Positions 24,102-31,392 of a DNA stretch of 64,000 nt are shown piece after piece. A program made the position numbers and the translations under genes. Below the pieces are notes generated by a model, which saw only the letters and a program-made list of their open reading frames with translations, made no database searches and had not been told where the DNA came from. The stretch's first letter is position 1. Each line of letters begins with the position of its first letter. Source of the stretch: Camelus ferus (taxonomy: Eukaryota). The DNA is taken from assembly GCF_009834535.1 (NCBI RefSeq), contig NC_045707.1, forward strand, positions 20,274,001 through 20,338,000, read 5' to 3'.

Positions 24102-31392
<7,291 letters not shown>

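Follow-up and report, generated by a model that had tools for sequence, protein, structure and literature searches.

Arginine at a conserved cysteine position of the PMEL Kringle-like domain in the wild Bactrian camel

The PMEL gene of the wild Bactrian camel, Camelus ferus, encodes an arginine at residue 514, the fourth of the six cysteine positions of the Kringle-like domain (KLD). The gene lies in the stretch of DNA analysed here, hereafter the window, which comprises 64,000 nucleotides of the forward strand of assembly GCF_009834535.1 (contig NC_045707.1, positions 20,274,001 to 20,338,000). We consider it probable that the change is a genuine germline missense allele, p.Cys514Arg, which arose after the split from the domestic Bactrian lineage and which partially impairs the function of the protein. 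Arg514 is linked to C. ferus-type copies of PMEL and is not camelid-wide. PMEL serves as the standard model for amyloids that are functional and non-toxic, and the cysteines of its KLD are thought to time assembly by disulfide exchange. A natural Cys to Arg change in the KLD of healthy wild animals would be a ready in vivo test of this disulfide-exchange step.

A gene model built from the open stretches of the window placed the PMEL coding sequence on the forward strand at 24102..31392, with 11 coding exons (Table 1) and a total of 1911 nt that translate into 636 amino acids. All of the introns have GT-AG ends and the reading frame is unbroken. The encoded protein is identical to XP_006179880.1 (PMEL, Camelus ferus), so that the gene and the kind of animal, read as PMEL of a camelid in an earlier note made from the letters alone, were named correctly. 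It shares 99.7% identity with PMEL of C. bactrianus and 80-88% with PMEL of other mammals. At the nucleotide level, window positions 23102-32392 agree base for base with CM020779.1 of GCA_009834535.1 over 9291 bp, and position 30311 corresponds to CM020779.1:20,304,311. The animal is hence an Old World camel and no alpaca. The domain order is that of a PMEL orthologue. Pfam places the PKD domain at residues 235-298 and PKAT_KLD at 488-539, PF26141 (PMEL_NMB_N) is precomputed for a protein identical to that of the window, and both the repeat region, with its make-up of Pro, Ser, Thr and Glu, and the hydrophobic stretch past the KLD are recognisable in the translation. The full succession of signal peptide, N-terminal region, PKD, repeats, KLD, transmembrane helix and short cytoplasmic tail is present. 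Similarly, the second KLD exon (exon 9) is 206 bp long, which matches the length published for nine out of ten PMEL genes (PMC8273697). On the basis of gene calls in orthologous loci, PMEL is flanked by a protein-kinase gene upstream of 24000 and a diacylglycerol-kinase gene downstream of 31850, both on the reverse strand. We take these neighbours to be CDK2 (upstream) and DGKA (downstream), as in the human locus, and their order presumably fits the CDK2-PMEL-DGKA arrangement of other mammals. The locus is an ordinary, well-annotated PMEL orthologue in its usual genomic neighbourhood.

Table 1. Coordinates in the window of PMEL, its Kringle-like domain and the sites that distinguish camelid copies.
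Feature	Position	Strand	Description
PMEL coding exons 1-6	24102-24177, 26135-26245, 26401-26547, 27250-27384, 27761-27922, 28162-28803	+	
PMEL coding exons 7-11	29695-29811, 30052-30136, 30247-30452, 30555-30642, 31251-31392 (including stop)	+	
Codon 350, repeat region	28578..28580	+	TCT (Ser) in the window and C. bactrianus; CCT (Pro) in dromedary, alpaca and contig L001
KLD	30123..30388	+	Residues 488-539; PF20433 PKAT_KLD; exons 8 and 9, with intron 30137-30246 between them
KLD cysteine codons	30126 (C489), 30263 (C498), 30287 (C506), 30338 (C523), 30386 (C539)	+	
Codon 514, CGT (Arg)	30311..30313	+	c.1540T>C, p.Cys514Arg relative to all other camelids; from the sequence and aligned genomic DNA
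Codon 532, ACT (Thr)	30365..30367	+	Synonymous ACG>ACT; 30367 lies 56 bp downstream of 30311
Intronic base 31065	31065..31065	+	Both C. ferus assemblies alone have G; C. bactrianus, C. dromedarius and alpaca have A; third linked derived site

Several features of the camelid gene models were observed along the way. An in-frame ATG located 78 nt 5' of the signal-peptide start (24024-24101) produces a 26-residue extension in the 662-aa NCBI models of C. bactrianus. These long annotated N-termini probably represent read-through of the 5'UTR and no real protein, because an RNA contig (L001, described below) splices an upstream 5' non-coding exon (23706-23827) to position 24052. An alternative AG acceptor in intron 9, 24 nt 5' of exon 10 (30531-30554), would add the residues ALSGILLV ahead of the transmembrane segment, and this acceptor is in use in the NCBI dromedary isoform X2. 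Finally, the camelid repeat region (exon 6, 28162-28803) contains, near its start, one 13-residue unit fewer than those of pig, hippopotamus and buffalo.

Positions 30302-30316 read CAG CGG CTG CGT CAG, which translates into QRLRQ. Base 30311 is the first base of codon 514 and position 1540 of the coding sequence in the 11-exon model, exactly as the earlier note had numbered it (c.1540, p.R514). The same note had equated the residue with human C541 in the KLD and had described the other five KLD cysteines as intact, and both statements agree with our results. A primate PMEL of 661 amino acids has cysteines at 475, 516, 525, 533, 541, 550 and 566; since the numbering offset between the two proteins is 27, camel residue 514 is position 541. 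The five remaining KLD cysteines are found at residues 489, 498, 506, 523 and 539, and residues 60, 130, 138, 301 and 448 complete the luminal cysteines of the window PMEL, with two more (608 and 622) in the tail. Arg514 lowers the number of luminal cysteines from 11 to 10, and no new luminal cysteine that would offset this change was detected across the coding sequences of five camelids. Since the normal luminal number is already odd (11), we go no further than calling it plausible that Arg514 leaves exactly one thiol unpaired. Cys608 was ruled out as a compensating residue, as it is cytoplasmic and common to all Camelus, including those that carry Cys514. Codons 607-608 (31300-31305, cytoplasmic tail) encode Gln-Cys in Old World camels and His-Gly in alpaca, so this cytoplasmic cysteine is Camelus-specific.

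Profile comparison indicates that the window domain is clearly homologous to the KLD of the PKAT family, though one defining residue short. The PF20433 PKAT_KLD profile matched it along its entire length (positions 1-51 of 51) with 55.5-60.6 bits, compared with a cut-off of 27.7, and a Pfam KLD score of 66.6 bits with Cys514 fell to 60.6 bits with Arg in its place. Five of the six cysteines that define the PKAT KLD are present, the fourth is Arg and the spacing of the rest is unaltered. Classical Kringle domains have around 80 residues and disulfides joining cysteines 1-6, 2-4 and 3-5. The classical Kringle profile (PF00051) gave no matches at E<=1 across the whole window PMEL and the six KLD cysteines of PMEL span only 51 residues, and therefore the kringle disulfide pattern is not transferable as a means of naming the partner of Cys514. 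The PDB holds no solved KLD structure, the deposited PMEL structures being only M-alpha amyloid cores.

In order to place residue 514 in a wider context, two sets of sequences were compiled. A HMMER search with the exon-9 peptide produced 80 vertebrate representatives at the 50% identity level, 76 of which contained genuine KLD stretches covering the site. The cysteine was present in all 76 PMEL/GPNMB representatives, in the exact column in 74 of them and one residue later, past a one-residue insertion, in the other two. The mammalian set comprised 155 PMEL sequences, taken from searches of a 90%-identity protein collection together with the members of the camelid cluster. In this set, column 514 was Cys in 152 sequences and Arg in three. 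All three were from camels and Arg was absent from every other sampled species, showing that Arg is not a common mammalian residue at this site. The remaining KLD cysteines and Cys448 were invariant among the 155 sequences. Outside the three camel sequences, the Cys514 column is invariant in approximately 230 PMEL/GPNMB sequences of taxa that extend from fish to mammals, which implies strong purifying selection. Likewise, the six KLD cysteines have been reported as perfectly conserved in every PMEL and GPNMB sequence examined (PMC8273697).

The Arg514-bearing sequences known so far are three: XP_006179880.1 from the window assembly, EQB77760.1 from the older C. ferus assembly GCA_000311805.2, and P0208, the product of a 2132-nt Camelus mRNA contig (L001, Logan) from run SRR33129661. 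Cys was found in nine out of nine other camelid protein records (three versions from C. bactrianus, four from C. dromedarius and two from alpaca). We then aligned 8.4 kb of genomic DNA from the window with four more assemblies, those of the older C. ferus, C. bactrianus, C. dromedarius and alpaca (V. pacos). At base 30311, L001 and the two C. ferus assemblies have C, whereas C. bactrianus, C. dromedarius and V. pacos have T. The T in the other camelids indicates that TGT is ancestral and that the Arg codon was derived from it by T>C, a single transition, as had been proposed from the window; the change makes a CpG. By the same comparison, the suggestion that Arg might be a camelid-wide, lineage-fixed rewiring of the KLD had to be abandoned, since alpaca, dromedary and domestic Bactrian camel retain Cys. 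As for further camelids, the protein search returned no PMEL records from llama, guanaco or vicuña and matched only the two camelid clusters already known. The exact exon-9 ORF was present in the protein collection in neither its Arg nor its Cys form, and a search for camel copies with the 81-aa exon-9 frame retrieved fragments of other mammals alone, none of them above 93% identity.

Further comparison of the Arg514 copies revealed several haplotypes. The two C. ferus assemblies, which come from one consortium and might even represent one animal, differ within the 8.4 kb at five SNPs (28072, 28335, 28562, 28839 and 28953) and three single-base indels, and the older one carries the C. bactrianus allele at 28335 and 28953. 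These differences imply at least two Arg514 haplotypes. Contig L001, which was assembled without a reference, is a spliced PMEL mRNA with junctions exactly as in the gene model. Its coding sequence differs from that of the window at a single position, 28578 (Pro350 for Ser350), and it carries C at 30311, T at 30367 and the two-humped-camel allele T at 29753. L001 is a third Arg514 haplotype and demonstrates transcription and correct splicing of the Arg514 allele. At position 30367, the three Arg514 copies (window, older C. ferus assembly and L001) share T, and C. bactrianus, dromedary and alpaca have G; 30367T marks the Arg514 haplotype. Codon 350 is polymorphic for Ser and Pro among two-humped camel sequences, and the occurrence of Ser350 in the window and Pro350 in L001 means that Arg514 is found on at least two haplotype backgrounds. 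One nonsynonymous (Cys514Arg) and one synonymous change were counted on the C. ferus branch, and the coding sequences of the five camelids were all intact. Pseudogenisation or relaxed constraint is disfavoured by this count and by the intact ORF and splice sites.

Published work suggests how Arg514 could act. Furin cleavage of PMEL leaves M-alpha linked to the membrane-bound M-beta, which holds the KLD, through a disulfide that involves Cys301 in a cross-dimer (PMC8032716). The KLD is dispensable for trafficking and aids the resolution of disulfide-bonded dimers, thereby regulating amyloid formation (PMC5037717, reviewing Ho et al. 2016), and its cysteines drive the exchange of intermolecular for intramolecular disulfides (PMC7554809). 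In the mechanism that we propose, c.1540T>C would have arisen after the wild Bactrian lineage parted from that of the sequenced domestic Bactrian camels, and Arg514 would remove the fourth of the six KLD cysteines, in the luminal part of M-beta, and with it one KLD disulfide or exchange partner. Because dimer-resolving disulfide exchange is a published function of the KLD cysteines, the lost partner should slow the resolution of ER-formed PMEL dimers into monomers before amyloid formation. Slower resolution would in turn make melanosomal fibrils fewer or less ordered, and eumelanin would be visibly diluted to a mild degree at most. Ho et al. (2016, J Biol Chem 291:3595) reportedly found that single KLD cysteine mutations stabilise the dimer and impair fibril formation. 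Complete loss of Pmel in mice dilutes pigment only subtly, according to Hellström et al., and for this reason Arg514 could persist or drift to high frequency in some 1000 animals; the wild camel population is estimated at 900-1600 animals (PMC6899786). A strong defect is less likely, because a wild species evidently tolerates Arg514. Taken as a whole, the analysis points to partial loss of function as the most likely nature of Arg514, with a dilution of pigment that would be mild at most.

The closest experimental counterparts are engineered human PMEL mutants that lack KLD cysteines or the entire KLD, which affect the same domain and residue class as camel Arg514. They reportedly stay as disulfide-bonded dimers and their fibril formation is impaired (reviews PMC5037717 and PMC7554809). 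In contrast to the camel allele, they are laboratory constructs of human PMEL. A natural counterpart is found in GPNMB, in which the KLD variants p.Cys425Arg and p.Cys425Ser lead to amyloidosis cutis dyschromica in human (PMC8273697, Table 3). Like camel Arg514, these variants represent the natural loss of a conserved KLD cysteine, p.Cys425Arg being likewise a T>C, Cys>Arg change, and they show the in vivo importance of a KLD cysteine. However, they affect a paralogue and are rare human disease alleles, whereas the camel allele occurs in apparently normal wild animals. By a rough count, we take GPNMB Cys425 to be the second KLD cysteine and thus probably another KLD position than camel 514.

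It is possible, if rather unlikely, that Arg514 is real but functionally neutral, a plain lineage marker with no pigment phenotype. The remaining KLD cysteines might re-pair, or the KLD might only fine-tune the timing of amyloid formation. A living wild species carries Arg514 on at least three haplotypes, the rest of PMEL displays no decay and the odd number of luminal cysteines in normal PMEL hints at flexible disulfide bookkeeping, all of which would suit neutrality. Such an outcome is difficult to reconcile with the invariance of this cysteine from fish to mammals and with the human disease that KLD cysteine substitutions cause in the paralogue GPNMB. We retain partial loss of function as the preferred reading.

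Dilution alleles are well known in the same gene, including p.Gly22Arg in Charolais and p.Leu18del in Highland cattle, Silver in horse and Dominant white in chicken, as well as merle in dog and the silver and Pmel-null alleles in mouse (PMC8273697). They produce a dilution of pigment, usually eumelanin, in otherwise viable animals (PMC8273697). The known dilution alleles are located in the signal peptide, the N-terminal and repeat regions, the transmembrane domain or the cytoplasmic tail, whereas the camel allele lies in the KLD. In addition, most of them come from domestication, while Arg514 comes from a wild species. Wild camels are paler than domestic camels, and Arg514 could conceivably be an adaptive or selected allele that dilutes eumelanin, contributes to the pale sandy wild coat and may be segregating among domestic Bactrian camels as a result of hybridisation. 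We regard this as improbable. Cattle, horse and chicken do have missense and in-frame PMEL alleles with a diluting effect on pigment (PMC8273697), PMEL variation is a proposed cause of the lighter coats of takins in dry, cold habitats (PMC9174980), and wild bulls are mated to domestic females (PMC6899786); the Pro350 background of Arg514 in the RNA-seq sample is also compatible with spread past one haplotype. Nevertheless, the supplementary candidate lists of a wild-versus-domestic camel selection scan contain neither PMEL nor its neighbours, and just three derived sites mark the haplotype. A combined reading appears doubtful as well. It holds that Arg514 has reached or nearly reached fixation in the wild Bactrian camel, that it represents the first case in any vertebrate PMEL of an otherwise invariant KLD cysteine lost in nature, and that, as a partial loss-of-function allele altering melanosomal amyloid, it helps to make the coat pale and has entered domestic herds by hybridisation. 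If this were true, Arg514 would dilute the coat in domestic Bactrian herds and would also reveal wild ancestry there.

It is practically excluded that the Arg codon reflects an error of assembly or sequencing, or an artefact that is somatic or private to the reference animal: a one-base difference in a single reference with three private single-base insertions nearby might suggest this, but the same C occurs in the older, distinct C. ferus assembly and in the reference-free RNA-seq contig from another run, the linked 30367T accompanies it in each, and there are no Ns within 500 bp of 30311. The insertions mentioned are non-coding, at 24330, 29400 and 31147, where the window has one extra base each compared with the four other camelid assemblies, and they may be small indel errors of assembly or private variants.

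No description of camel PMEL Arg514 was found in the searchable literature when PMEL was combined with camel terms. The published table of animal PMEL alleles includes no natural KLD cysteine variant and its domain key has no KLD entry (PMC8273697, Table 1). As far as we have seen, Arg514 is already in public protein records and yet apparently undescribed. For camel genetics, it would be a candidate pigment allele. It is also a possible component of the genetic load in a critically endangered species of about 1000 animals. Together with the linked 30367T, Arg514 provides a coding marker that distinguishes C. ferus-type from domestic-type PMEL haplotypes and that may aid the monitoring of hybridisation.

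Two minor observations concern other positions. The window contains two runs of N, at 53233-53372 (140 bases) and 58391-58526 (136 bases). Within the KLD, codon 492 (30135-30136 and 30247), which follows the first KLD cysteine and is split across the junction of exons 8 and 9, encodes Arg (AG/A) in camel. This residue is Gly in 138 out of 155 mammalian PMEL sequences and Arg in all camelids, including alpaca, and Arg is also found in a few hystricognath rodents (naked mole-rat, Damaraland mole-rat and porcupine). Codon 492 looks like a tolerated site, unconnected to Cys514Arg.
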